Counted from the stretch's first letter, positions 2,322 through 23,611 are shown. The stretch is DNA of 24,180 nucleotides from Selaginella moellendorffii (GCF_000143415.4 NW_003314304.1:880300-904479); one strand, 5' to 3'. Made by a program: numbers and translations. The notes: a model not told the origin generated them from the letters alone.

Positions 2322-5300
2322 ATGGCCAATGTTGATCCCACGGGTGTGTTGAGTGCGCTTGTTTCTGCAGCTGTCAACGAAGTGATTGGGCTCTCCAAGT
2401 CTGGCATTCATTGCAAGGAGAAGTGCAGCGATTTGGAGGATTCTTTGACCGAAGCATCAGCTCTGCTGGGTGAACTGAACAGGTATTCGGGCTCTTTGAG
2501 CTCCTCACATTTGAATACCTGGCTAAAAGCCCTCAAAACCAAGGTTGAAGAGGCTAAATCTCTTGTTCTTGAGTGCCAGTCCCTACAAAATCCCATTCTA
2601 GATTTCCCAAAGAGGTCGGTTGTGCTTCTCTTGAAATACTCTTGGCTGAGTTGTGACTTGTTGCAGGATAACACTTGCTACCAAGATTGACCAGTGCTCC
2701 AAGGCGATTCACGGGCACTTGGCTGCAGCTTCTCGGCATCTTGGCGTTGAGCTTCTGCAGAGAGTTGCATTGAAGAAGCAAAAGGAGGTGCCCTCTAATG
2801 TGGTTCCAAAGGAAGAACAGCATGTTGTTCCTCTGGATGAGCACATTTTTGGTATGGAAGAGATGCTGGAGCGGGTTGTATCAGACTTGCTGGGGTCCCC
2901 TGTAAGCAGCAAGTGGGTTGGAGTTCATGGAGTAGGAGGTGCTGGAAAAACACTCTTGGCCAAACGAGTATGTGAAAACCACCAAGTCAAGGAGCATTTC
3001 GATCCAGTTTTGTGGCTAACATTCGGTCAGACATGTCAGGTAACTCCTTAAGCTTATCATAGCTTCAAGCAATACATATATTGCTATGGTTGCATCTCCT
3101 CAGGTGGAAGCAAAACAAGCCGAACTTGCCAATCAAATCAGACTAGAAAGTCGGATTAGCAATGAAACACTGAGGAGGGGGCTTGCAGGAAAGAGGTGCT
3201 TGATGGTGTTGGATGATGTCTGGACATCTGGCGATCTTTTGGATCTGTTTGATGTGGTGCAAGAGAATGGAAGCAAGATCTTCATTACCACTCGAAAACT
3301 TGATGTGCTTGACAGCAGAGGTGCAATTAAAACCAAAATGGGGCTTTTGGGAAAGGAAGACAGTTTGAAATTGTTCACAGTCCATGCGTACCCAAACCAA
3401 AAATATGCTCAGAATCAAGTCAAGAAGATAGTAATGGAGCAAGTTGTGGAGAAGTGTGGGGGGCTTCCACTGGTGTTGAAGGTAATTGGCAGAAGAATGG
3501 CAGGCAAACAAGATTGGGACTTTGTTTTGGGAAAACTCAATGATCAACAACTTGCTACTCTTGATGAGGAACAACAGGTATTGCAGCGACTTAAGCTGGG
3601 GTATGATGCATTGTTACCTCTTGGCATCCAGCAGCACTTTCTCTTCTTTGCTGCATTTCCAGAAGACAGGCAAATTGGATTCTGGGATCTATTCAAGTGT
3701 TGGAAAGGGGAAGGGCTGGTTGCCAACGCAGCAGAGGCCGTGAATGTTTTAGAAAGGCTCAAGAATCACGCACTTATCACTGACGAAGAAGACTCTCCAG
3801 GTGGACGGTGGCTGGGGGATAAGAGGTACAGGATTCACGATGCGTTATTGGCTCTTGCTTTGCACATATTGGAACAAGAAGGCCCCAAGTGTTACTTCAA
3901 GGTTGGCTGCTCGAATGCTTGGGATGGCTTCACAAGTAACTACAGCAAGATTTCACTGGTAGGGTGTCGTCTACCTATAGGGAAGAACAGGGTCACAGTT
4001 TCAAGCACCACTTGCATGCTCCTGGATCAAAATTATTTCCATCTTACTTCATTGCCAAGCCTCTCTCTTTTCAAAAGCTTGAAGGTTTTGTGCTTGAGTC
4101 GCAGTGGAGTGGTAACCCTACCACATAGCATTGGAAAGCTCAAGAATTTACAGACTCTAGACTTGTCTTGGAATACATCACTCCAAAGCATTCCAGATTC
4201 GCTGGGAAAGTTGACCAACTTGTCATATCTGGACTTGGGGAATTGTCGGACACTCGAGACTTTCCCCGTGGATGCTTTGCTCAAACTCACCAACCTGGTC
4301 TATATAAATGGAGAGAACAACTTTGCAATGTGGACTTGCCACAGGTTGCATCATCGACTTTTCAAACATAAGAAATGCTTAAACAGGAGGTTTGGTCTCC
4401 ATCTAGATGGAATGTTTCAGGCATTGACAAAGTTGGAAGTGTTGATTATTCATACAATGTTAGCTGTGGAGCTACCTGCAAGCATAGGCGAACTGTCCAA
4501 TTTAAAAGAGCTGGAAATAAGGGGTCAGACGAGGGTAACATATGACAGCTTTCAATGCTTGACCAACCTTGAAAGTGTGAAACTGCAGGAATTGGATCTT
4601 CCATTGTCAGACTGGGATTGGAGCAGATTTCCAAGGTTGAGAACTTTGGAAGTGGGAGGCTTAAATGGGGAATGTGAGTTTAAAGTAACCTCCAGCATGG
4701 AGAACTTGCAAACCTTGGTTATAGGTTGGAATCACCACCTTGAGTGCCTTCCTTTCTTAACACAGGAAATGCTTCCCATGCTGACAAGCCTCTCCCTTTC
4801 GAATTGTGAAAATTTGACTGAGGTGCTTACCATTTCTCAATTGGCATCACTAAAGGACCTCAGCATCTGGATGTGTCCATCCTTGAAGGACTTGCCTATC
4901 TCGTTCCTTCCAAATCTAGATACACTTTATCTAAGTTCTTGCGACAAAGTGACCACACTCAACATATCCGAGTGCCCATCACTGAGACGTGTTAAAATCG
5001 ATAGCTTCGGCATGCTTGCCTGTGTTGCATTTGGTGGCAAGTTCCCACGACTTCAAGAAATATTCCTCGAAGGATTTGAAAATCTCCCACATGTCTCTCT
5101 AGGTGCCATGGATGCGTTCCCACAGCTGACACGGTTGGAAATAGAGAGCTGTGGTATTCACCAGCTACCAGAATGGTACACTTCATTCACAAAGTTGAGA
5201 GCTCTGAATTTAAGGCATCTGGAAAATTTGGATGTGATACCTGATGGTGTTGCAAGGCTTCCTTTGCTAAGAGAGCTTGATCTGATGGGTTGCAGGAAGA

Positions 5301-5467
5301 TCAGCATGTTACCCTCTGCAGATTCTGAGGACAGCTCCTTTTATCCATCCTTGGAGTACTTAACCTTGACTGGCACGTCTGTCTCTCAGGAGCACCTCTC
5401 GCAACGCCTTCTAAAAGTTGTACGAAATGGACAGAAGTTACCAGATAATATCGATGACTTTGCTTGA
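2322..5467 (+). CDS. NLR (NB-ARC-LRR) immune receptor with RPW8/Cbl-N-like four-helix N-terminal domain; join(2322..2614,2667..3039,3104..5467), 1009 aa
   Basis: GT-AG introns 2615-2666 (phase 2) and 3040-3103 (phase 0) join three ORFs in frame. Motifs: P-loop GVGGAGKT, kinase-2 LMVLDDVW, RNBS-B GSKIFITTR, GLPL, RNBS-D-like FLFFAAFPED, MHD as IHD, then many LxxLxLxxC LRRs. Confidence 0.93.
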
Positions 5468-5490: not shown

Positions 5491-7080
5491 TCATCTATGG
5501 TGTAGAGGGCGATCCAAAGAGTCTGGAAATCCAGCGATCATGACATATGGAACACATTCCCCAGGCCGTAGCTGTGATGCTTTCTCCGCCGCCAAGGCAC
5601 CTAGGCCGGGATCGTTGTGAATCTTGCACGCATTCAGCAGTGCAATCCACATAGAATCGATGGGCAAGCACGGCATCCTCTCAGCCAAATCTTCGATTTC
5701 CTGGAGCAATCCCGCGCGGCCGAGCATGTCCGCAACGCAACTATAGTGCATGGGCGATGGAGTGAGAGAGTGATCCACCGCCATAGCCGCAAAGTAGTCC
5801 AGGCCCAACCGGATCAGCCCACCATGGCTACACGCGCTCAGCAGCGTCGTGAACATCGCCCCATCCGGTTCTATGCGTCCTTCCAGTTCCAAGGTCCGGA
5901 ACAGGTGGACTGCCTCAAGTGGGTATCCATTCCTCGAGTATGCCTCCATGAGAACCGTGCATGGCTCTAAGTGTCTCTCAGGGAGATTCTCTAGCACGGC
6001 TCTTGCTCTGGAAAGATTCCCCGCTTTTCCATAGCCTTCGATCACGGCCGTTGCCGAGAGTGAATCGTAGCGTGGCAGTTTTGCCAGCATTGCCTGGGCT
6101 ACTGACGGATGCCCGCTTTGGGCATATGCCTGGAGGAGGATTGTCCACGAGACAATGTCTCTGGCGTGCATTCCATCGAAGATGTGTTTTAGCTCGTGAA
6201 GATTTTGGGTCTGTGATTTTGAGCAAGCTGTGACGATGGCGTTGCATGAGACGAGATCGTGCTGCGGCATTTTGTCGAATACAATGCGTGCGTTTTTATA
6301 ATCCCCTCCCTGGTCATACGCTGTTAGTAACGCCGTCATGGAGATTATGGATCGCTCTCTCATCTTTTCAAACACGAACTTTGCCTGTGTGGCCATGGCG
6401 GCTTGGCTGTAGGCGTGGAGCAGTGGATTCATCGCCGAAGAGCCCAGCATTGGCATTTTGTCTAGAATTTCTGACGCTGTTTCTAAATGCCCATTAAAGG
6501 CATTTGCAGAAACCAGAGCATTCCAAGCCACGGAGTCCTTCGTTTGCATACCGTCAAAAACTTTTATTGCGGATTCCAAATATTGTCTATCGGAAAACGC
6601 TTTGATAAGAATCGTTCCTGAAAATACGTCTGGAACCAACATCTTGTCGTAGAGTTCCTTTGCTTCCTGCAAATGCCCTATTCTGGCATATGCATTGAGC
6701 ATGACACTCCAGGTAAAGGATGGTTTTTGCGTCAGAGAATCAAACACCTCCCTCGCCAAGTTGACATTCCCGTTGTGGGCATACGCACTGAGCAGCGCCA
6801 GCCGCGAAGAATCATCCCGCGGCTCGTCAATTCCCTCATAAACAATCTCCGCCTCACGCAAGCTCCCGACTCTCCCATACATTTGCACCAGCAAATTCGC
6901 GAGAAATCGGTTGCCCCTGTGCCCTGCCGCGACGATCTCGCGGTGAATCCCTCGCACTTGCGACAAATCCCGGCACTGGCGCAGTCGCTCAACGCAGGAT
7001 TCGAAATTAAAACCCCGCGAAGAAGAAGAAGAAGAAGAAGCTAGCTTTGATTTGATCCACTCTGCGCGAACCCTCCTCAT
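5491..7080 (-). CDS. PLS-class PPR protein (S/SS array, P2-L2-S2-E1, truncated E2), 529 aa
   Basis: Intronless ORF with ~31-aa repeats (..FDKMP.D.VSW..), then LLSACSHGGL, HYSCVADMLGRAG and WIALLNACKIH. No PG box or DYW. The Arg/Ser-rich N-terminus is compatible with organelle targeting. Confidence 0.93.
   Translation of the reverse strand: MRRVRAEWIKSKLASSSSSSSRGFNFESCVERLRQCRDLSQVRGIHREIVAAGHRGNRFLANLLVQMYGRVGSLREAEIVYEGIDEPRDDSSRLALLSAYAHNGNVNLAREVFDSLTQKPSFTWSVMLNAYARIGHLQEAKELYDKMLVPDVFSGTILIKAFSDRQYLESAIKVFDGMQTKDSVAWNALVSANAFNGHLETASEILDKMPMLGSSAMNPLLHAYSQAAMATQAKFVFEKMRERSIISMTALLTAYDQGGDYKNARIVFDKMPQHDLVSCNAIVTACSKSQTQNLHELKHIFDGMHARDIVSWTILLQAYAQSGHPSVAQAMLAKLPRYDSLSATAVIEGYGKAGNLSRARAVLENLPERHLEPCTVLMEAYSRNGYPLEAVHLFRTLELEGRIEPDGAMFTTLLSACSHGGLIRLGLDYFAAMAVDHSLTPSPMHYSCVADMLGRAGLLQEIEDLAERMPCLPIDSMWIALLNACKIHNDPGLGALAAEKASQLRPGECVPYVMIAGFPDSLDRPLHHR
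7019..7040. repeat. (GAA)n microsatellite encoding poly-Ser in the PPR N-terminus
   Basis: gaagaagaagaagaagaagaag gives SSSSSSS on the minus strand. Confidence 0.9.
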
Positions 7081-8030: not shown

Positions 8031-9827
8031 ATGACCCAATGTGCTCTTTTTCTCATCTTCGTGAGCACCCAAATTTCAGTCCCCAGCCCCGGCGCCATCG
8101 CCAGGAGGAAACAGCGCCAGGAGCAGGATTTCTTTGCGGATCTCCTCCGGTCCTGCACTGGAATCGACGATCTCGACCGCGGCAAGCAGATCCACGCTCG
8201 AATTCTCGGCACCCAGCACGGCAGCAACAGATTTCTCGCCAACACGCTGGTCGAGATGTATGGGAAATGCGGCAGCATGGAGGACGCGAAGATGGTCTTC
8301 CATGGGATTGAAGACCCCAATTTGTTCTCGTGGAGCATTCTCCTTGTGGGATATGCCCAGAATGGGTATCTGGAAGATGCGGAGAAAATATTCGCTGCCA
8401 TGCCCGAGAGAAATGTTGTGGCGTGGACGGCGATGCTGGCAATGCATGCCCAGGCGGCCAATCTCGAGGAGGCTAAAAGACTATTCGACGCCATGCCCGA
8501 GCAAAACGATGTGTCCAAGAACACGATGCTTGCAGCGTATGCGCAGAATGGGCATCTGGAAAAGGCGAGACTACTCTTTGACGGCATGGGCGATCGAAAC
8601 GTAGTCTCCTGGACGATTATGGTCAGCGCCTACGGGCAGAATGGGCTAGTCAATGAGGCGAGGACTCTATTTGACCGAATGCCTACGCGCGGTGTGGTTG
8701 CATGGAACGCTCTCCTTACAGCAAATGCCAGGCTTGGGCATCTTGAGGAAGCAAAGAAGCTTTTTGATTTAATGCCCGAGTGGAATGTGATCTCCTGGAC
8801 GGCCATGGTTGAGGCGTTTGCTCGCGATGGCTACCTCAAGCAGGCTAGGCAGGTGTTTGATCGTATGAAAGAGCGAAATCTCGTTTCCTGGACCGCGATC
8901 TTGAGCGGCTATGCGCAGAGTGGAATGATTGAAGAAACGAAATGCTTCTTTGACAGGAGTCCCGAGCAAAACATCTTCACCTGGAATTCACTGCTAGCCG
9001 CATTTGCGCTCCACGGCTTTCTCGTCGAGGCACAGCAATTTTTCGATCTCAAAATGGTGGAGCATGATCTGGTTTCCTGGAACACCATGATCACTGGCTA
9101 TGCTCAAGCAGGGTATATGCAAGAAGCGGTATCTCTCTTCAACCGGATGCCGTCCAAAGACGCAGTGACATGGACGGCTATGATTACCGGGCATGCGCAG
9201 CTTATGCAGCACCACGAAGCCCAAAGAGTCTTTCGACTAATGCCCGAGAGAGACGTTCTCTCGTGGTCTGCAATGGTAGGAGTGAATGCCCAGAACGGGC
9301 ATTTGGAAGAATCGCGGAGAATTTTCGATGAAATGCCCTTCCGGGACGTTGTTTGCTGGAACTCGATGATCTCGTCGTACGCGGGGTCGGGCCGTGGAGA
9401 GGAATCGCTCGAGGTTTTCCATTTGATGGATCTGGATGGCACGAAACCCGATCACGTAACGTTCTCCAGCATCCTCACCGCGTGTAGCCATCTCGGACTC
9501 TTAAACTCCGGGTGGCGGATGTTCGTGGTCTTGGCGGTGGATCACGGCGTCCCGCCGCGGCAGGAGCACTACGCGAGCATGATCGATATCTTGGCCCGGC
9601 TGGGAAAGCTGGGCGAGGCGGAGGAGCTCGTCAAGAGCATGCCTTTCGTGCCAGATCTCCAAGAGTGGGCGACTTTGCTTGGAGCTTCCAGAGTCCATCG
9701 CAACAAGAAACTGGGGATGGAGGCGGCCAAGTCGGCGATCCATCTCGGCACCAAAACCTCGTCCACGTTTGTGCTCCTGTCGGATATGTACAAGGAAGAT
9801 CGATCGCTGCGAAGACTAGCAACTTAG
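8031..9827 (+). CDS. PLS-class PPR protein (12 tandem S/SS motifs, P2-L2-S2-E1, truncated E2), 598 aa
   Basis: Intronless ORF with very regular 31-aa repeats, ILTACSHLGL, HYASMIDILARLG and WATLLGASRVH. It ends shortly after TFVLLSDMY. Confidence 0.95.
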   Translation: MTQCALFLIFVSTQISVPSPGAIARRKQRQEQDFFADLLRSCTGIDDLDRGKQIHARILGTQHGSNRFLANTLVEMYGKCGSMEDAKMVFHGIEDPNLFSWSILLVGYAQNGYLEDAEKIFAAMPERNVVAWTAMLAMHAQAANLEEAKRLFDAMPEQNDVSKNTMLAAYAQNGHLEKARLLFDGMGDRNVVSWTIMVSAYGQNGLVNEARTLFDRMPTRGVVAWNALLTANARLGHLEEAKKLFDLMPEWNVISWTAMVEAFARDGYLKQARQVFDRMKERNLVSWTAILSGYAQSGMIEETKCFFDRSPEQNIFTWNSLLAAFALHGFLVEAQQFFDLKMVEHDLVSWNTMITGYAQAGYMQEAVSLFNRMPSKDAVTWTAMITGHAQLMQHHEAQRVFRLMPERDVLSWSAMVGVNAQNGHLEESRRIFDEMPFRDVVCWNSMISSYAGSGRGEESLEVFHLMDLDGTKPDHVTFSSILTACSHLGLLNSGWRMFVVLAVDHGVPPRQEHYASMIDILARLGKLGEAEELVKSMPFVPDLQEWATLLGASRVHRNKKLGMEAAKSAIHLGTKTSSTFVLLSDMYKEDRSLRRLAT

Positions 9828-9893
9828 AGGATAGTTTATATCGGACGATCTTTTCTTTCCAACATTCTGGGAGCTGAGATCGCAGCTTGCGAT

Positions 9894-12800
9894 CTAGTTG
9901 GCGATCCATTCGATCGGGTACTTTTGTGGGCCGGAACCAGGGAGCGTGGACCAATTCACGGGCACCCAAAACTCGAGCGTCCTCACGAGCACATTCCACT
10001 GCCGCCACACCGTCTCCTCGTCAAGAACAACCCACTTGTTGGAGGAGTCGAGCGCCTCCTCCTCCGCCACATCGCCGCTGGACACCCGCTGGAGCACCGC
10101 CAGCTTCACTTGCTGCGTCCGGATCTTCACATCGCGCACGACCGCGTGGGTGAATTCGCCGGTGCCGCTGCCGCGCACGATGACGATGTCTCCCTTGAGC
10201 GGCCATGGTGGGATGCACGGCACATTGCGCGCCTTGAGCACCGTCCTCGCGGAGCCGACGATGGAGCCAAGCCCGCCTTTCACGCCCCACGACGGAATAT
10301 CTTTGTCTGCAAACAGCACATTCCGTCAGTAGCATATACCGTTACCCCACGAGAATATGCCAGATTTCTGGCGGGATTTTTCAAAATCGTGTTCTTACCG
10401 GAGATTCTAGGGCCGCCCATGAGCTCGGAGGCGCTGCGCTCGTCCGCTAGGGCTTCAGCGAAGGCGACGAGCTTGTCCTTGACGCGCGTCGTAGCGCAGG
10501 ATGGCTGGACGTTCAATTTGCTGAGCTGCGGCACTCGCGGCTCCACCAGGCCGTCGAGCATCTGGACGACGCGCCCCATGGTAGGCCGCTGCGTCGGATC
10601 TTCCTGGATGCAGCACAGCGCCACACGGATCGAGCGCTTGGCTTGATCCTCGTAGAAATATTCCACCTCCTCGTGGAGCTGCTCGTCGATGAGCTCCATC
10701 GGCCGCCCCTCCTCGACCATTCTCACGGCCCACGCCGGTAAGTACCACTGCTCTGATCCCTTAGAGAGGTCGATCGTTTCGCGGCCACAGATTAGCTCCA
10801 GGAGGACCATTCCAAAGCTGTAGACATCGGCCTTGGCCGTGACTGCTGTTCCGTGCAGCCATTCTGGAGCTAGATACCCAGGTGTTCCTCTCATGTTTGT
10901 GACCACCCGGCTCTTATCTCGATCCATGAGCTTCGCTAGCCCAAAGTCCGAGACCTGCCACCATTTCCATCTTAGTTCCTTCTATCTTTCTATACCTTCT
11001 AGCGAGTGTTTTTGTTACCTTTGGCAGGAAGTTCTGGTCGAGAAGAATGTTCTCGGGCTTCACGTCCAAGTGAATGATTTTTTGGCTGCATTCTTCATGG
11101 AGGTAAGCAAGTCCTCGGGCCGTGCCAAGCGCAATGCTGTATCTCCGTGACCAGTCAAGCATGCAATCCTTTCCTGCTCAATGGTTTTTTATGGTAAGCT
11201 CGCTCTCTTTCTCTCTTGTAATGACCAGGAAAACTTACCAGGTGTTATGAACAGCCACTTGTCAAGGGAGCTGTTTGGCATGAAGTCATAGATGAGTATT
11301 CTCCGCGGCCCTTGCGCGCAGTATCCTCTCAGTCGGATGAGATTCAGGTGACGAACCGTTGCCATCACACTCACCTCTGCCTTGAATTCTTTCTCACCTT
11401 GTGTTGACGTTCTTTCCAGCATCTTGACGGCTACTTTGCTCCCGTCCTTGAGTGTTCCTTCGTACACCAGCCCAAAGCCACCGTCTCCTAGCTTGACACT
11501 GAAGTTGTTTGTGATCTTGCGGACTTGCTTGAACGAGAACTTCGCGGGACCGGCTTGTGGTACAATGTCTTTGATTGATGCTGAAGATTCCGTCTTGACC
11601 GGTGTTGGTTTCTTACGCAGCTTTTTTTGAATGCAGATTCCACCGCACAATGCCAATGCTGTAGCACTAAGAAGCACCGTTATTGATATCACAGCTTTCC
11701 GCTGCAACACAAACAAGTAAGTATTGAGCTTTTGTCTTTGATAGTATACCTTGCGCTGATTTGGCTCTTGTTTTTGTGTTGAAACAGCCTGTGTTGGTGG
11801 TAATGCTGTCTCCTTCACGCCAGAGGAAGGTTGAGAACACATCACTAAGTTCAAACTTTGGAAAATTACCTTCTTTTCTGCCAGGCGTTCTTGCTCGGGC
11901 TGCTCAGATATGGAAAGCAACGTTCGTCCAGCCTCCGACGAAGAAGTTGAAATAGGCCTTTTACCGCGGGTCTTTTGGGCAAGAAACATAAGGTACTTCA
12001 TCCCAAGTAGCTTCCGAGATTTCCACTTGCTATACAAAGAAATTTACCTTTTCAGCTGAATGGAAGATAAAAGAATGCCAACAACTTACTCGGGTTTCGG
12101 GCACTGGACATCTATGTGCACAGCCCCGTAGCAACTGAGTCGCAGACCGGCAGCTTTATAGCCATCTGAGAGGACAATGGGATCTATGCTTTTGACAGAG
12201 TAGTTCAGAAGATCCTCAGAAATGGTTCTGGTAACGATGTTAGCATCTTGGGAGAGATGAAGGCCTTTTTCGGTAAATTCTGCGTACGTTGGTCGCTTAC
12301 AGGTGTATAAGACGTCCCTTCACAAACAACCAGCACAAGAATTGGAATTTGGAAGAGCTGGGAAGCAAGCTCCTTACGTGAGATCACCAACGTTGTAGAA
12401 GCTCCAAAACCACTTGACGGAACTTCCAGAATACAGAACCAGACCGCCAACTTCCATTTTCAACGTATATATCCCGTTTATCTGCTTTTGAACATCAGTT
12501 TTTGTGAAGGCGAAGATCAACGTACCAATTTCATGCCGGGACTAAGAATCTGTCCAGGGAGCATCGTATCAACGGGAAACTTGAAACTTTCCCACACTGG
12601 CTGCTGTGCTGAGTTATACAGACCTAAGTTACCGGTGTCCAGGAGATTCATGCTCAAGATCTCCATGCTCGAGGTGAGTGTTTCCCATACATTGCTGGCA
12701 TCACTGTGGGATAAAACCAGGTTCCCATTCTCTTCAAACTGCAGCACCGTATTTTCCTTGAGCATACAAGGAGTCCCTGCTTCGGTCTTCGCGGACCACA

Positions 12801-13211
12801 CTCTTTGAATGACGCTCTCATTTTCAATAGGATAAGACAAGTCATAAATCGAGAGAGTGAAGATGCCAGACGATTCGCTGAAGAAACCGAAGAGGTATCT
12901 GCATTGTGATCCTTTTTGTGAGGCACGTCGGGATCATAAAAGACTTACCTCGCGTTGGGTGACTGCAGGATAACACGGGCAGAAATGCCTCTCTTTTTGC
13001 TGATAACAGCAAGCTGTCCACCGTTTTCCCATGAGATCGTCTTATGCGCAAGCAGAGAAATGAAGCTTGGAGTGTCCGCACTGTACGTTGCCTCTGATTT
13101 ATGAGACGAGAAGCAGTATTCAAGAAGGGCACTAGCCATTAAGAGCAGCAAGAGAAAAGAGCAGCTGTGACGAACTATGACGAGCTTTCTGGTGTTTGGG
13201 GAGTATATCAT
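9894..13211 (-). CDS. G-type (bulb) lectin receptor-like Ser/Thr kinase, SD2-like non-RD, with extra C-terminal domain; complement exons 13211-12949, 12898-12526, 12481-12378, 12317-12090, 12029-11870, 11812-11750, 11701-11239, 11173-11019, 10954-10399, 10306-9894; ~925 aa
   Basis: Nine GT-AG introns keep one frame. Signal peptide; B-lectin motifs ([40 protein letters not shown]); TM helix [22 protein letters not shown]; kinase motifs [31 protein letters not shown]. Introns 11869-11813 and 11749-11702 are in-frame and stop-free, so they are less certain. Without the last intron the frame stops at 10280. Confidence 0.85.
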
Positions 13212-13965
13212 CTATGGCGATCGATTCGTAAGCAGCGGCATTGCAAGCGTTTCGCTCATGAGGACAGCTGAGATACCGCTTTAAGGCAGCTGGAGTTTAT
13301 CTCACAGCAACAAGCGCCGGTTCCTATCCTCTGTCACTTCAGGGGCTACATCTCAAAATAATCTTCTGGCCGTGCTCCTGCCAAGTGATACTGGCCCATC
13401 CTTTTCAACCTTCACATGGATATATCGCGTATACAAGCATATATGCTCCTGACGAGACTCACTACGGACAACGTAAAATATGGAAGTCCTGTTGGTCCAG
13501 AAGCAAGCTGTTTTCTTACCATCGGAAGCAACGTTAATGTGTTATAGAAGATTCCAAACTGGTTCAGGTCAGTTTCTTAGCTCAACTTTGTTTTTCTTTT
13601 TTTTTCTTGGTATTCTTGCTGATCTTGTCTTCTAACTCATTTTCAGCATGGGCTACTAGCTAATGAGACAATGCTTGACCACGTGATAGAGTCAGGCCTA
13701 GCAAATGCTCAGAAAAGTCGAATAAAGGTACAACTTGGTTGTTTTACGAGTTTTCTTCGTCCGTGATCGTATCTTCCCTGTGAAAGTTATGCCTTCAGCA
13801 GGCACGCATGGGTCTTTTGTAGTTTTTCTCTTGGCTCAACGCTCAAACGTTCCATGTTACGAGGAAACAGGAGCGAGCGTCTTTCACTTTCGTGCCTTAT
13901 CATTACGCTGCCAGCGGTGCTTCTCGTGAGCTTTTTATAGTCTTTTCATTCTCTCTCGCTGTTAC

Positions 13966-16320
13966 TTAACGAAGATGTTGCAGGCTCGCGCTTGTGGCAG
14001 CGATGCTGGAAAGCATCACATAAGCTGCCGCTGCTTTTCTTGGATCCATGCTTACAATACCATCAGCAACATCTCCACCCGGTAAGCTTTCATCTCCCAC
14101 AGCTTTCGAGGCGCCGAGTATTGTATTCCAGGCAACGCTGTCGGGATTGTAAGGCATGCTATTGACCAGCTCCCGGGCCTCCTCCAGCCTCCCCGCTCGT
14201 CCCAGAATGTCGACCATGCAACAAAAGTGCTGGAAAGTCGGGACCATCCCGTGCTCCGCTCTCATCGCAACGAAGAACGCTCGTCCATCTTCGACAAACC
14301 CGGCATGGCTGCACGAAACCAAGGCTGCCACAAACGTCACCTCGTTCGCGGCAACGCCAGTCACAGCCATGAGACGCTGGAGCTCGGTCACGTCCTCCCG
14401 GAGCCCGTTGCAAGAGAAGGCCCCCACCAGCGCATTCCAGGAGGTGACATCGCTTTGATCCATGGCATCGAAGACGAGCTTCACTTGGTCGAGATGCCCA
14501 TTCTGGGCATACGCGGAGAGCATCACGGCCTGCAAAGTGGCATCCTTCTCCGGGGCCGAGTTAAAAGTTTCCATGGCTTCACGCAGATCACCATTCCTCG
14601 CAGCCAAGGCCAAGATCAGCGTCCATGCCAGGACATTCCGGCTGGGAATTCTTCGAAACAAAGCTCTGGCTTGATCGCCATCTCCATTCTGGACGTGCGC
14701 TTCCATCAGAGCCGTCCATGAGACCACGTCCTTCTGCGGCATGGAGTCAAAGAAGGCCTTGGCCCGGTCAACGCGACCGCTGCCGGCCATCGCAGTCAGC
14801 ACCACTGTTGACGACTCGACGGTCAACTCGGGCATCCTGCCGGTCAATGTCAACACCTGGTCCAGCTGCCCGTTCGTCGCGAGGGCTGAGGCCATGGTAT
14901 TCCACGTTGACTCGTCCCTTGTCGGCATTTCTCCAAAGACCTTAGAAGCGTTTACTAAGAAGCCGCGTTGACTGTAAGAGACGAGAAGAGAGTTCCACGC
15001 AGTGACGTTCCACTGCGGCATGAGATAGAAGGTATTTAAAGCGAGATCCAAATGACCAGCACAGGCATTTGTAGAAACCATGGCGTTCCAAGCAACAGGG
15101 TTTCTTTGAGGCAGTTTCACGAAAAGAGCCAAGGCTTCCGTGTGAGAACCTTGTTTGCCAAGACAGATGATCGCTGAGGTACGGGAAACTACATCGTGCT
15201 GTGGCATTCTTTCAAACCAGATCATAGCAGAGGCAAACTGGCCATTCTCCACTGAAGCCTGGAGCATCGAATTGTAAGTAAAGACGTCCCGGAAGGACAT
15301 TGAATCAAAGATCCGCTTCGCATCGTTAGTGTTTCCCACTTGGGCGTAAGCCGAGATCATGGCATTCATCAAAACGACGTCCCACTGCGGCATTCTTTCC
15401 AGAACCTCTTTAGCTTGCGCAATCTCTCCTCGTTCCTCAAACAATCCAAGCATCGTCGTCCATGAAACAATGTTGCGCTCGGGCATTTGATAGAAAACAC
15501 TCTCTCCCCCGCTTGCCTTGAGCAAACAGTTCCACGACTCCACGCTATGTTTGGCCATTCTTTCGAGAACATCCATTTCCAAAAAACAACTTCCAGTGCT
15601 CGCCACCGCTCTCAACATCACATTCCAAGTGATGGAGCTTCGCTGCGGCATCGCATCAAAGAGTTCCTTACACTCTTTAAACTGCCCATGCTCGGCTTTT
15701 GCAGACATCACGGCTGTACACGAAACCAGGTTGTGGTGTGCCATCTTCACGAAACACTCAAACGATTCTTCTACGAGATCTCTAAACAAAAATCCAGTTA
15801 CAAGAACTGTCCACGCAAAAACATCTTTTTTAGGCATTTGATCAAACAAGATCCAACATTCATCAAGATGCCCATTCTCGACAAACATTTGCAGCACAGC
15901 GGTACAGACCCGAGAATCAAAATGGGGGATCTTGAGCATGTACTGCTCGGCCTGAGCGATCATACTCTTCTGGGCTAAGCCAGTGATGATCACAGTCCAG
16001 GAAACACAGTCGCGCTGTGCCATCGCATGGAAGATCTCGATGGCCTCGCGGAGGCGATCGTTCTGCGTGAATGCCGCGGCCAGGATGTTCCAGGAGAAGG
16101 CATTGGGCGCGAGGATACGATCAAACGCCTCCTTGGCGTCCTGCAGTCGGCCGCACTTGCCATGCATCTCCACGAGGAGGTTGGCGAGAAGAAGCGAGCC
16201 GTGGTGCTCACTGCTGCTGCGAATACATGCCTCGATCTGGCGGCCCAGGTGCCAATCTCTCGTGGAAGAACACGACCTCACAAGCCGTGCCAATCCCTCT
16301 ATCGACTTTGGAATATACAT
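13966..16320 (-). CDS. PLS-class PPR protein (long S/SS array, P2-L2-S2-E1, truncated E2), 784 aa
   Basis: Intronless ORF with ~31-aa repeats, ALVSCSHAGF, HFCCMVDILGRAG and WNTILGAS. It ends after AYVMLSSI. No DYW. Confidence 0.94.
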   Translation of the reverse strand: MYIPKSIEGLARLVRSCSSTRDWHLGRQIEACIRSSSEHHGSLLLANLLVEMHGKCGRLQDAKEAFDRILAPNAFSWNILAAAFTQNDRLREAIEIFHAMAQRDCVSWTVIITGLAQKSMIAQAEQYMLKIPHFDSRVCTAVLQMFVENGHLDECWILFDQMPKKDVFAWTVLVTGFLFRDLVEESFECFVKMAHHNLVSCTAVMSAKAEHGQFKECKELFDAMPQRSSITWNVMLRAVASTGSCFLEMDVLERMAKHSVESWNCLLKASGGESVFYQMPERNIVSWTTMLGLFEERGEIAQAKEVLERMPQWDVVLMNAMISAYAQVGNTNDAKRIFDSMSFRDVFTYNSMLQASVENGQFASAMIWFERMPQHDVVSRTSAIICLGKQGSHTEALALFVKLPQRNPVAWNAMVSTNACAGHLDLALNTFYLMPQWNVTAWNSLLVSYSQRGFLVNASKVFGEMPTRDESTWNTMASALATNGQLDQVLTLTGRMPELTVESSTVVLTAMAGSGRVDRAKAFFDSMPQKDVVSWTALMEAHVQNGDGDQARALFRRIPSRNVLAWTLILALAARNGDLREAMETFNSAPEKDATLQAVMLSAYAQNGHLDQVKLVFDAMDQSDVTSWNALVGAFSCNGLREDVTELQRLMAVTGVAANEVTFVAALVSCSHAGFVEDGRAFFVAMRAEHGMVPTFQHFCCMVDILGRAGRLEEARELVNSMPYNPDSVAWNTILGASKAVGDESLPGGDVADGIVSMDPRKAAAAYVMLSSIAATSASLQHLR

Positions 16321-18470: not shown

Positions 18471-19886
18471 AAATCTATATTTTGGACTGAATCTGCTCCA
18501 TTCAATTGCAACAAGTTCAAACAAAACTAGTGTTTTAGAATTTTCTTTCTTTCTTTTTCTTTAAAGAAAGGGATAAAAAGGATATAGAAGATACAAGGAG
18601 TGACCTGACCTTTATTATATAATGCTGGAAGAGGATAAAAGTCATGAATTTGAGTTAACATCAGTCTCAAAAGCTAATTAGAGGGAAAATAGATTTTGTT
18701 ATTTGCTGCAATAATGTTTTATAGACTGTAGTTACTCTCAAAGTTATTTACTTTAGTTGATACTCTCAAAGTTGGTTCGCGCATTTGAGTGTAGGACATA
18801 GAGTTTTAATTTATTCATTGGCATTCCTTAGTGATTGATATTTATGTTATAACTTTGAATTTTTTTTTCTATCATAGTTATCAACAATTATATTAGTGGT
18901 TATATAGGAGTTTCAAGTTCTTATGGTAGTATATAATCCATTAGCAAAATCTTTAATGTTCTATCTGACTTAATGTCATCACATTTTCATCTTTTAGAAA
19001 GGAGTATTGTATAATTTTTATAAATATATGTAATTGTATAGCATATAGACCATCAATTTAGGATTAAATTTGGTCCATCCATTTCTATATATAAGTAGGA
19101 GTATAAACCTCAATTAATATATTATTCTTACATTTTGAGAAATTATACAATACTATATTATTATATTAATTTTTAGAAGTTTATATATATATATATGAAA
19201 GAAATAATTTATTTATTACCACGCACTATGTTTATGGTTTTATAAAAAGCATTATATATAGATATAGGAATCATTCAATAGCATATTTATCAAGTTTAAA
19301 ATATTAAGGATTTTAAAGGTTATTTGAGAAATACTTAATTGATATTTTACACTGCAAATTTTGCAATAGAAAAAAATTAAAGTGTTCTTTATATTCACTC
19401 TAATAAAAAAGAAATAGCTGCAACTAAACCAGATTATTCAAGGAGTTATTTTTACATGTGTTATATAAAGGCTTATAGGATGCTCAAATAATAAAGCAAA
19501 AAAAAACATATTCAATATAATTTTAAAATGATAAGCTGACTATATTTTTAAGAAAAAATTGTATTAGAATATTATAGTAATAATTATTCAACAACTATTA
19601 TTCATGAAATTACTGAAGAAGATATATATTGTGCTTCATTAACAAAAGCAACTTTATTTAGTTGGTGGAGTAGACTCATAATCACAAACTTCTTCTATGG
19701 CATAACATCTAAGGGATACAAATATAATATTTAATAAATTTTATAGCATGTAATTTAGTTATCTATTTTAATTATCAGTCTAAATCATCACTGAACTATA
19801 TTGTTTTCATTACAAAGTGATAAAACATTTAGTGATAAGTATTTAATATATTAACCTGCCCAAAATGGCTTTGGTTTAAATAGCAC

Positions 19887-20646
19887 NNNNNNNNNNNNNN
19901 NNNNNNNNNNNNNNNNNNNNNNNNNNNNNNNNNNNNNNNNNNNNNNNNNNNNNNNNNNNNNNNNNNNNNNNNNNNNNNNNNNNNNNNNNNNNNNNNNNNN
20001 NNNNNNNNNNNNNNNNNNNNNNNNNNNNNNNNNNNNNNNNNNNNNNNNNNNNNNNNNNNNNNNNNNNNNNNNNNNNNNNNNNNNNNNNNNNNNNNNNNNN
20101 NNNNNNNNNNNNNNNNNNNNNNNNNNNNNNNNNNNNNNNNNNNNNNNNNNNNNNNNNNNNNNNNNNNNNNNNNNNNNNNNNNNNNNNNNNNNNNNNNNNN
20201 NNNNNNNNNNNNNNNNNNNNNNNNNNNNNNNNNNNNNNNNNNNNNNNNNNNNNNNNNNNNNNNNNNNNNNNNNNNNNNNNNNNNNNNNNNNNNNNNNNNN
20301 NNNNNNNNNNNNNNNNNNNNNNNNNNNNNNNNNNNNNNNNNNNNNNNNNNNNNNNNNNNNNNNNNNNNNNNNNNNNNNNNNNNNNNNNNNNNNNNNNNNN
20401 NNNNNNNNNNNNNNNNNNNNNNNNNNNNNNNNNNNNNNNNNNNNNNNNNNNNNNNNNNNNNNNNNNNNNNNNNNNNNNNNNNNNNNNNNNNNNNNNNNNN
20501 NNNNNNNNNNNNNNNNNNNNNNNNNNNNNNNNNNNNNNNNNNNNNNNNNNNNNNNNNNNNNNNNNNNNNNNNNNNNNNNNNNNNNNNNNNNNNNNNNNNN
20601 NNNNNNNNNNNNNNNNNNNNNNNNNNNNNNNNNNNNNNNNNNNNNN
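19887..20646. other. Assembly gap
   Basis: Run of N. Confidence 1.
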
Positions 20647-21550
20647 TTCGCTACGATCTCAGTCCCTTTACAAGTTTGCTTAAACAAACCAAAAATTAGT
20701 ACTGCTAAATCCGTTATGAGTCCCTCTTATAATAGTTGAGTTAATTAAGCATTTTGACTGTACTTAAACTAAATAAGCATAAAGATGAAATTCTTATATG
20801 TTATTAGCTAATCATACTTAGCTTAGTAAGGAGTTTCCTCTAAATTGTATCTTGCATTGACTAGTGACAAAAACCCTCATGTATTAAACACTGGTCCCTC
20901 AATATCTCTATGTGATAATTTATTATTTACCAGACACCCTCACTATTATATCCTATATGTTACCAGTCCTATTACCTATATATTAAAAGTGTCATATTTA
21001 TAAAAATGTAGAGAATATCCTAAATATGATGGTATTGTTTCCATATCCAAATTTACAAACTAACATCATTCCATATTTAATAATTTTTTAAGTATTTTAT
21101 AGAGACTAACACTTTTAGTGGTGAAAGCTTGAAATGTGTTTTTAAATAAGGGGGTTCTAATAGTAAGGATCAGATATGGTTGAAAAACTTTAGATATTGT
21201 CTATTTAATGTGTTTGTCCTTATTCTATGTGGAAACAATGGTCTATCTTGACTAGCACAAATCCTAATTCAAGCATGGTGCTATATACAAAACCTCTTCA
21301 CATTAGGGCTTTTAATTGCCTTGTCTTTAGCATTAAGTTATTAGATATTTATCAAATAATATGAGTGATCTAGCTTTATCTAAAGCTTACTTATCAAATG
21401 GTATTGCAAAGGATAGATTTTTCTATACTAGTAGGTTGATTCCACCTCTGTCAGTATTATTTGGTTATATTTAATCTATAATGTTGGATTACATTGAGTC
21501 TTTAATATAGCGATTCACTTCTTGATGAAGTGATCACTCCATCTGTTGGG

Positions 21551-21650
21551 NNNNNNNNNNNNNNNNNNNNNNNNNNNNNNNNNNNNNNNNNNNNNNNNNN
21601 NNNNNNNNNNNNNNNNNNNNNNNNNNNNNNNNNNNNNNNNNNNNNNNNNN
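21551..21650. other. Assembly gap
   Basis: 100 N. Confidence 1.
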
Positions 21651-22689
21651 ACACTCTCACTATCATTCATTATTTATTGATCCCATTTTGGTCCAATTAA
21701 TTATTTATAGAAAGTGTGTAAATTTGGTTGTTAGGCATCTTTATATAATATAGAGATTGTTCTAAACAAGATGATGTTATTCCTACATTCAAATTCATAA
21801 TCAGTAAGTTTTTAACAAGTTATCTTTTGTAACTAGGGTGAAAGCTTAAAGGAGGGGGTTCGTTCCAAATATATAGTCATACCAACTTTAGGCATTTTTA
21901 AGTTATTTATTGGGTGTGTTTATCTTTGTTTTTTATCTAGCTTAAGTATAAGCCCAAATTCCATACTATGCTAACTAGTATAGTACTCATATCCTCATGT
22001 TAAACCACCAATATGCTAAAATAGCATTAGATTTAGTTTGACTTCATTTTATATATTAGTTTTGGTGTTGGGATGTTGGATGTTTTAAGATTGTTTAATT
22101 TATACTCCATACTCTTATTCCTTCTTTCCTAAATGATATGTTTAAGTATCTTTTTGTTCATTAATAGGCCAAATCCCACACTATTGCCCTTGGCACATAT
22201 GTCTAAAGGAGATTTTTTCTTTGTAGTTATTTTATAGTAAATCACTGTAAAATATAAAGTGAAAACTACATACACCATATTTAACATGTCCACACATCAT
22301 AGCAATCATGTTATACATCTTCAGTTACATCTCTTGTTGATTCTTATTGAGGGCTTGTAATTCATAAATAACATCATGGATAATTCAAACCCTAGATACA
22401 ACTAATCAACTAAAAGCCCCATTATCTCTCTTATAATTCTTGTAAAGTTTAACCTTTTACATCAAGTCATGTTCCTTCCCTTCTGCGGCTAGCTATATGA
22501 ACATATAGCTTAGACACTCCGTGTGCTCCAACATGTCACCTCCATCTTTAAAGACACATGCCTCCAATTGCAAGTGAATCCTGATGACCACTCTTTTTTT
22601 GAAAGTGTCCTCACCTCCCTTTGCCAGGCTTCCAGCCCAGATCCAACCACTGGCTTGGATCAAAGAGATTCACAATGCCATACATGCTC

Positions 22690-22789
22690 NNNNNNNNNNN
22701 NNNNNNNNNNNNNNNNNNNNNNNNNNNNNNNNNNNNNNNNNNNNNNNNNNNNNNNNNNNNNNNNNNNNNNNNNNNNNNNNNNNNNNNNN
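22690..22789. other. Assembly gap
   Basis: 100 N. Confidence 1.
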
Positions 22790-23611
22790 TTGTTACCTCC
22801 ATCTGGTGGGAAGCTGCTCTCACCATACCGCAAGATCCAGCTCTACTAATACCACGACCTAGAATAATGTTTATTAGGTTAATTGGGTAGGCCACTAATG
22901 AGGATTGCTGCTTCTAATGTGGAAATGGAGGAACCATCATTGCTGCCACTAGCAAGAATCTAGAAAGAAATAAGAGTGGAAAGTATGATCTAACATGAGC
23001 TACACTAAAATCTCTCAAGCTCACACACTGAAACATTCAACACGCTCCAAAAACACTTTTAAACATTATTAATCACTGTAAGACTTCGCTGTCACGTCCT
23101 TCTTCCATATCTCCTCGGATCACAAATCTTCCTTGCCCTTTGTCTCGTAGCAAAGATTTTACATATCTTGGTGGATCTCCCCCCCCCCCATATAAATACA
23201 TAGTTGGATAGAATGATTTCAATTCCATAGCACTGATTTGATTAGTGAAATCTCAGTGAATTTTGGAATCCTTGGAATACTTGATACAGAATTATAAACT
23301 TTGCTCGGATTTTTCTGAACTTCTGCGAGAAGTGTGATGAATCTTCCTAGTCCGGCCAGGCTCCTAATGTTTGCTCAAACAGTCAAGTCTGTGCTCCAAA
23401 TTTCAACATGATTTTATACACAAGATTTGCAAATCTCGCCTAAGACTTAGTCTCGAGTCAATCGCCACATTTTAGTCCATCATGGCTGTTTCCTAGTACT
23501 GGAGCAACGTCATGCGAAAGGCCAACGCTCCTATGTATGTATATATATATATACGTAATTTCCTGATATACAATCATCTTGTTTTGTATTGCTGTGTTGA
23601 TCTTGATCGCC

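Follow-up and report, generated by a model that had tools for sequence, protein, structure and literature searches.

Plant receptor kinases are usually described as an ectodomain, a membrane helix, a kinase and a short tail. The SD-2 group of S-domain kinases, described in PMC3616866, lends its name to a Selaginella moellendorffii protein, XP_002968897.2, which NCBI calls "SD2-5"; an atypical, lectin-only layout is counted among the SRLKs (PMC3616866). The term "C-terminal" is absent from PMC3616866, and the papers retrieved on the evolution of S-domain kinases and on the architectures of plant lectins mention no domain of this kind at the C-terminus. A stretch of 24,180 nucleotides from S. 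moellendorffii (GCF_000143415.4 NW_003314304.1:880300-904479; hereafter the window, with positions counted from its first letter) carries on its minus strand a gene for a G-type lectin receptor kinase of this lectin-only layout, in which a spliced last exon places a whole extra domain, predicted to be folded, behind the kinase. Proteins bearing the same tail are already in public databases, under generic names. The locus represents a receptor-kinase family that is already known, here with a tail domain that is conserved, related to transposases and not described before.

Transcripts join the tail exon to the kinase

The kinase-tail gene is real and expressed. Four of the public sequencing runs that contain this stretch (X1, X2, X7 and X8, from four studies, guessed to be RNA) were aligned to positions 9400-13600. 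Contigs of X1, X2 and X7, from three studies, join 10306 directly to 10399, skipping 92 nt bounded by CT..AC on the plus strand, with 255, 255 and 30 letters, respectively, on the shorter side of the joint. On the minus strand the joint reads CCT AGA ATC TCC G/GTAAGA ... TGTTTGCAG/AC AAA GAT ATT CCG, the slashes marking the cuts. Intron 9 (10307-10398) is thus a 92-nt GT..AG intron of phase 1, with its donor after 10399 and its acceptor before 10306; the codon rebuilt across the joint (G+AC) specifies Asp, and the frame is from there on that of the open reading frame (ORF) 9894..10319. Eight other short introns are likewise removed in the joint-bearing contigs of the same three runs and, because the introns are absent, these contigs must derive from RNA. 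Record 3 of X2 (2,879 nt) spans positions 13260 to 9842 with ten exons joined and nine introns out, and carries the lectin, kinase and last exons on one spliced molecule. After shifting of ambiguous cuts, each of the nine introns has GT..AG ends and a length of 44-92 nt, and the joined coding sequence stays open over 925 codons up to its stop. Intron 9 is covered by no contig in X1 or X2. X8 has none of the splice joints of the kinase gene and therefore looks DNA-like or antisense.

A preliminary description made from the DNA letters had proposed this fusion, and on this point it is borne out: the coordinates that it gave for a 92-nt, phase-1 junction at 10399/10306 are correct, the in-frame passage into ORF 9894..10319 yields a frame open over 925 amino acids, and the added exon, put at about 137 amino acids, comprises residues 789-925, which is 137. 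Transcripts across the junction, which it had named as one of the checks to make, are present in three runs from three studies. The parts of the gene, all on the minus strand, are as follows.

12949..13211, minus: exon 1, with the start codon at 13211, a signal-peptide-like hydrophobic N-terminus and the start of the ectodomain (longest ORF; joint 12898/12949 in X1, X2 and X7).
12526..12898, minus: exon 2, bulb-type (GNA) lectin domain (PF01453 B_lectin, E 2e-15; contig joints).
12378..12481, minus: exon 3, ectodomain (joints 12481/12526 and 12316/12377, cut +1, in X1, X2 and X7; GT..AG).
12090..12317, minus: exon 4, ectodomain without a Pfam match (contig joints, GT..AG).
11870..12029, minus: exon 5, ectodomain or stalk (contig joints, GT..AG).
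11750..11812, minus: exon 6 (contig joints, GT..AG).
11239..11701, minus: exon 7, transmembrane helix (residues ~399-421), juxtamembrane segment and kinase N-lobe with GDGGFG and VAVK (hydropathy; Pkinase / PK_Tyr_Ser-Thr).
11019..11173, minus: exon 8, catalytic loop HLDVKPEN, non-RD (motif, GT..AG).
10399..10954, minus: exon 9, DFG, APE and kinase C-lobe (Pkinase E 2.8e-13), then part of the linker (residues 743-788).
10307..10398, minus: intron 9, GTAAGA..TTGCAG, 92 nt, phase 1 (contigs).
9894..10306, minus: coding part of exon 10, residues 789-925 and the stop codon (9894-9896), with the remainder of the linker and then the barrel (no Pfam family).
9897..10226, minus: conserved tail domain, residues 816-925, seven predicted strands (alignments A1 and A3; AlphaFold).
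9842..9893, minus: 3' untranslated region, at least to 9842, where the X2 contig ends.

The encoded protein is a 925-residue type-I G-lectin non-RD receptor kinase. Its hydropathy peaks only at residues 10-35 and 399-422, a signal-peptide-like segment and a single transmembrane span; this predicted topology would put the kinase, the linker (743-815) and the tail (816-925) on the cytoplasmic side. The kinase gives a split Pkinase / PK_Tyr_Ser-Thr match in which the catalytic motifs are all present through DFG and APE and, judged by these motifs, is a catalytically complete non-RD Ser/Thr kinase. Neither the scanned exons nor the Diphasiastrum orthologue P0001 gave a match to S-locus glycoprotein or PAN/apple domains.

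The tail is conserved on kinases of mosses and lycophytes

A phmmer search with the 136-residue last exon against 1.84 billion representative sequences returned 10 matches; six are kinases, with the match at the extreme C-terminus. The tail-bearing sequences are listed below.

P0001: Diphasiastrum complanatum G-lectin receptor kinase, bulb-type lectin present (phmmer E 7.7e-33).
P0005 / P0032: S. moellendorffii XP_002968897.2 / XP_002974074.2, named "SD2-5", without an ectodomain.
P0004 / P0021: Sphagnum kinases.
P0006 / P0033: Physcomitrium patens XP_024398914.1.
P0003: kinase fragment from a transcriptome assembly, moss-like by sequence.
P0002: from the same transcriptome source as P0003, linker and tail only, with no Pfam kinase match.

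Identity to the window protein is 66-72% in the kinase, 48-58% in the tail, 14-30% in the linker and 14-35% in the ectodomain, which places the tail second only to the kinase in constraint. In Sphagnum, residues 184-564 of P0021 (C-lobe, linker and tail) are encoded in one uninterrupted stretch (L001 6757-7932), which makes the fusion independent of any splice call. The PPW motif of the tail is preceded, at a distance of 24-35 residues, by a phase-1 intron in Diphasiastrum (L005) and in the S. moellendorffii paralogue (L004), as it is in the window gene. Between runs, the last exon differs at only 2/413 nt, one change being synonymous (K790) and the other, E870A, falling in an acidic loop, and intron 9 differs at 7/92 nt. 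Conservation of the reading frame in orthologues, the lack of which would have counted against the preliminary description, is found on the Diphasiastrum, Sphagnum, Physcomitrium and S. moellendorffii kinases. By sequence comparison the barrel is an ancient, constrained part of an SD-2-like S-domain kinase lineage that occurs in mosses and lycophytes both with and without the ectodomain.

Alignments A1 and A3 show an invariant PPW, V-x-R(D)V, EE and several invariant Trp residues in the tail; the acidic loop, between tail strands 3 and 4, is present in the window protein only. The linker between kinase and barrel, ~70 residues long (743-815), is variable and flexible, and contains a short conserved helix, R-x-K-x-K-L-x-A-F/Y. 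The moss linkers (P0004, P0021, P0033, P0015) carry several (V/M)ESP(R/K/Q)V repeats that the lycophyte proteins lack; these could be proline-directed phosphorylation sites or ligands of the barrel.

The tail is predicted to form an SH3-like barrel

Pfam has no family for the last exon, for the trimmed domain or for any of the 15 aligned members (E <= 10; scattered single-member noise). One member gives a sub-threshold match to SH3-B_UBE2O (E 0.004), which points in the same direction as the structural comparisons described below. A PDB sequence-profile search gave 0 matches at E <= 10, and an ESM Atlas feature search with the last exon gave no usable match. AlphaFold modelled the whole exon, from the 11-sequence alignment A1, with a predicted local distance difference test score (pLDDT) of 65.9 and the first 30 residues disordered; the trimmed domain, from the 15-sequence alignment A3, reached a pLDDT of 82.5 and a predicted template modelling score of 0.74, with seven strands.

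Foldseek against PDB and viral models returned nothing at E <= 0.001. With an exhaustive structure aligner, the top matches (Z 5-6.8, values that below Z 8 may reflect a common arrangement only) are all SH3-like barrels: the UBE2O SH3; the PHF19, SMN and TDRD3 Tudor domains; the AIPP3, Rsc2, DNMT1 and EBS BAH domains; and also PWWP, chromo-barrel, KOW (Spt5/NusG), the C-terminal domain (CTD) of the murine leukaemia virus (MLV) integrase, and MazF. The model superposes on the three Tudor domains at 1.8-2.6 A over 56-59 residues. The four BAH domains, whose full fold has ~130 residues, align with it over 80-93 residues at a root-mean-square deviation of 4-4.4 A (Z 5.7-6.7), without a sequence match. 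The tail is read here, from the model, as a predicted SH3-like barrel core with a C-terminal hairpin, of no assignable family. The earlier guess at an SH3-like barrel of Tudor, KOW or BAH type is borne out by the confident AlphaFold barrel and by its uniformly SH3-like top matches.

Shape searches of the Atlas yielded weak matches, taken as leads and not as assignments: plant DUF3444 proteins, whose template modelling score of 0.51-0.55 with the first model was not repeated with the better one, PemK/MazF and a DDE_1 transposase.

The tail is shared with transposase-like proteins

Among the weaker phmmer matches, two without a kinase, at E 1.8e-4 and 3.7e-4, are a protein of the fern Adiantum capillus-veneris (P0009 / P0047, the latter KAI5066799.1) and one from an environmental assembly (P0010). 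A search for homologous proteins with the domain profile, under a length filter, gave the Adiantum fragment alone; a search with P0047 added a single protein, P0049, of 780 amino acids. A hidden Markov model (HMM) built from twelve kinase tails only finds P0009, P0010, P0049 and P0047 at E 3.8e-11 to 7.4e-6 (for a database size Z of 1.8e9), and the match covers the whole barrel at the very C-terminus of these proteins. On this profile evidence the window tail and the C-terminal domain of transposase-type, TNP2/KDZ-like proteins are homologous, and the preliminary description was right to raise transposon proteins as a further place for the exon. The nearest named Atlas clusters of P0049 are Transposase_21 (TNP2) or Plavaka (KDZ), with a score of 0.95 and 193 shared features; hmmscan reports Transposase_21 at a sub-threshold E of 0.036, and the contigs carrying the transposase-like proteins have several ORFs on the same strand. 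The non-kinase proteins that share the tail are probably transposase proteins of the CACTA superfamily.

Two further phmmer matches, a Ceratitis repeat protein (P0007) and a bacterial repeat protein (P0008), are spurious, and the kinase-tail HMM misses both with filters off. By eye, a second barrel-like stretch (GDxVVVR...HWKAxV..FF) is visible ~130 residues upstream of the shared tail, at ~560-620 in P0049, ~195-250 in P0010 and ~245-300 in P0047.

Possible roles of the tail

By analogy with other small barrels, and taken jointly with the structural findings, the tail is moderately likely to serve the non-RD kinase as a docking or regulatory module in the cytoplasm. The barrel would lie in the cytoplasm and bind a short peptide motif of a partner, of a substrate or of the kinase's own linker, and through this binding the kinase would be coupled or gated, as other kinases are by small barrels. 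Because the same barrel ends transposase-like proteins that have no kinase, a ligand of its own is probable, and the barrel would not be merely a packing partner of the kinase. The relationship with these proteins would most likely reflect a domain exchange between a transposon and a kinase gene, in either direction, by the last common ancestor of mosses and vascular plants.

Several observations weigh against this account. The docking role itself is drawn by analogy. The alignment under the fold model is shallow (15 sequences), 3/5 models scored only ~60, and the structural matches are weak, the best Foldseek E being no better than 0.08 and the best Z 6.8. The transposase identity of P0049, P0047 and P0010 comes from sub-threshold and feature-based matches. 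In the phmmer search no representative at E <= 0.001 came from seed plants, from liverworts or hornworts or, as a kinase tail, from ferns. Finally, contigs that keep intron 9 exist in X7 (157 nt) and X8 (148 nt), though only as short pieces with 7 mismatches each, and these may be DNA, pre-mRNA or another allele.

Such unspliced pieces, together with the transposase-type relatives of the tail, could be taken to mean that there is no fusion at all, the last exon being a separate transcript or a transposon relic reached by chance read-through splicing. This explanation is extremely improbable: it is already contradicted by single contigs carrying lectin, kinase and tail, by the undivided Sphagnum exon and by the strong constraint on the tail sequence, and the architecture recurs in Diphasiastrum, Sphagnum, Physcomitrium and the S. 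moellendorffii paralogue, with the phase-1 intron conserved. The deep conservation, the low variation within the species and the fixed position of the tail argue against an artefact and, equally, against an integrated decoy, that is, a copy of an effector-targeted host or transposon domain carried on the kinase as in nucleotide-binding leucine-rich repeat receptors with integrated domains (NLR-ID) or kinase-fusion resistance proteins. Non-RD kinases, to which this one belongs, are often linked to immune receptors; an NB-ARC-LRR gene lies ~4.5 kb away, and the domain also occurs outside kinases. Integrated decoys, however, are typically lineage-specific and variable, whereas this fusion is common to mosses and lycophytes, only the kinase is better conserved in the protein than the tail, the last exon has far fewer differences within the species than the adjoining intron, and no free-standing host protein with the domain was found except the transposase-like ones. 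A decoy, the preliminary description's own suggestion, is thus very improbable: the tail is neither recent nor lineage-specific, and mosses and lycophytes carry it, with 48-58% identity, on one and the same clade of kinases.

The remaining alternatives keep the tail as a working part of the receptor and differ in what it would contact. An intramolecular regulator or stabiliser without a ligand of its own, packing on the kinase as a pseudo-substrate, a dimerisation device or a folding aid, would suit a tail that always stands behind the same kinase clade, at the extreme C-terminus and after a flexible linker with a short conserved helix, and the ESP(R/K)V repeats of the moss linkers could serve it as phospho-switches; the barrel also ends transposase-like proteins that have no kinase, hence does not depend on one, and this role is judged rather unlikely. 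A reader of chromatin, nucleic acids or methyl marks, acting either after release of the intracellular part to the nucleus or by binding RNA or DNA in the cytoplasm, is also unlikely, and a little more so. The structural neighbours of the tail mostly bind histone marks or nucleic acids (PHF19, SMN, TDRD3, AIPP3, EBS, DNMT1 BAH, Spt5/NusG KOW, MLV integrase CTD), the many invariant Trp residues could form an aromatic cage, and in the transposase-like proteins that end in the same domain target or chromatin binding is plausible; yet no structural match is specific (Z < 8), no cleavage site or nuclear signal was identified in the protein, and the SH3-like fold is equally used in plain protein docking. 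Less probable again is the more particular proposal that a barrel taken from, or given to, a TNP2/KDZ-type transposon reads a modified peptide, chromatin or nucleic acid and so links the lectin kinase to a nuclear or RNA target. If true, it would amount to a signalling route kept in mosses and lycophytes, with no seed-plant example among the phmmer representatives.

The tail offers a defined, testable handle on the signalling of this lineage, which has a member in the easily edited Physcomitrium. A whole extra domain, predicted to be folded, has been kept behind the kinase on one lineage over the moss-lycophyte divergence; it is a candidate new domain family for databases and would be a clean case of a module common to a transposon protein and a host signalling receptor. 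If seed plants truly lack the tail, a feature of signalling would have disappeared on the line leading to flowering plants.

Surroundings of the gene

The kinase gene (stop codon 9894-9896, minus strand) converges with a PPR gene (8031-9827, plus strand), and the two stop codons are 67 nt apart; an X1 contig is unbroken from 9400 to 10306, and the 3' ends of the two genes probably overlap. Plus-strand GT..AG joints at 11344-11417 and 11990-12054 (72 and 63 nt) occur in X7 and X8. Record 13 of X8 skips 11991-12053 yet retains the introns of the kinase gene, and looks like a spliced antisense transcript over the lectin and stalk exons. The neighbouring ORFs 3086-5467 (plus), 5491-7080 (minus) and 13966-16320 (minus) comprise one of NB-ARC-LRR resistance type and two more long PPR ORFs. 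The gene island of the window is GC-rich, and the flanks (1-1500 and 18500-22800) are very AT-rich (GC 0.17-0.30); runs of N occupy 19887-20646, 21551-21650 and 22690-22789.

Comparison with known systems

The G-type lectin S-domain kinases of the SD-2 group resemble the window protein in the lectin ectodomain, the single transmembrane helix and the non-RD Ser/Thr kinase, and the lineage of the window kinase has both receptor and ectodomain-less forms, as do the SRLK and SRLCK of PMC3616866. The window protein differs from them in a conserved barrel of ~110 residues, without a Pfam model, behind the kinase.

For the barrel itself, the royal-family and other SH3-like barrels (Tudor, chromo-barrel, PWWP, BAH core, KOW, UBE2O SH3-B) offer the nearest fold: the five-strand core of the model superposes over 51-56 residues at 1.6-2.1 A (Z 6.6-6.8), but the tail belongs to none of their sequence profiles, and is predicted to have two further strands at the C-terminus and, at the N-terminus, a lead-in that contains PPW. 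The C-termini of the TNP2 (Transposase_21) and KDZ-Plavaka-type proteins (P0049, P0010, P0047) show significant sequence homology to it from the LLK...GC(V/I)PPW lead-in through the entire barrel and likewise stand at the very end of their proteins; identity is only ~30%, and the window gene has no transposase part.

Animal Src-type SH3-kinases and plant kinase-fusion resistance proteins likewise combine a kinase with a small non-catalytic domain through a flexible linker, and are best regarded as work-alikes of the window protein. They share no homology with it, and the barrel of the window protein stands at the C-terminus of a transmembrane receptor and is an anciently conserved part, not a recent integration.

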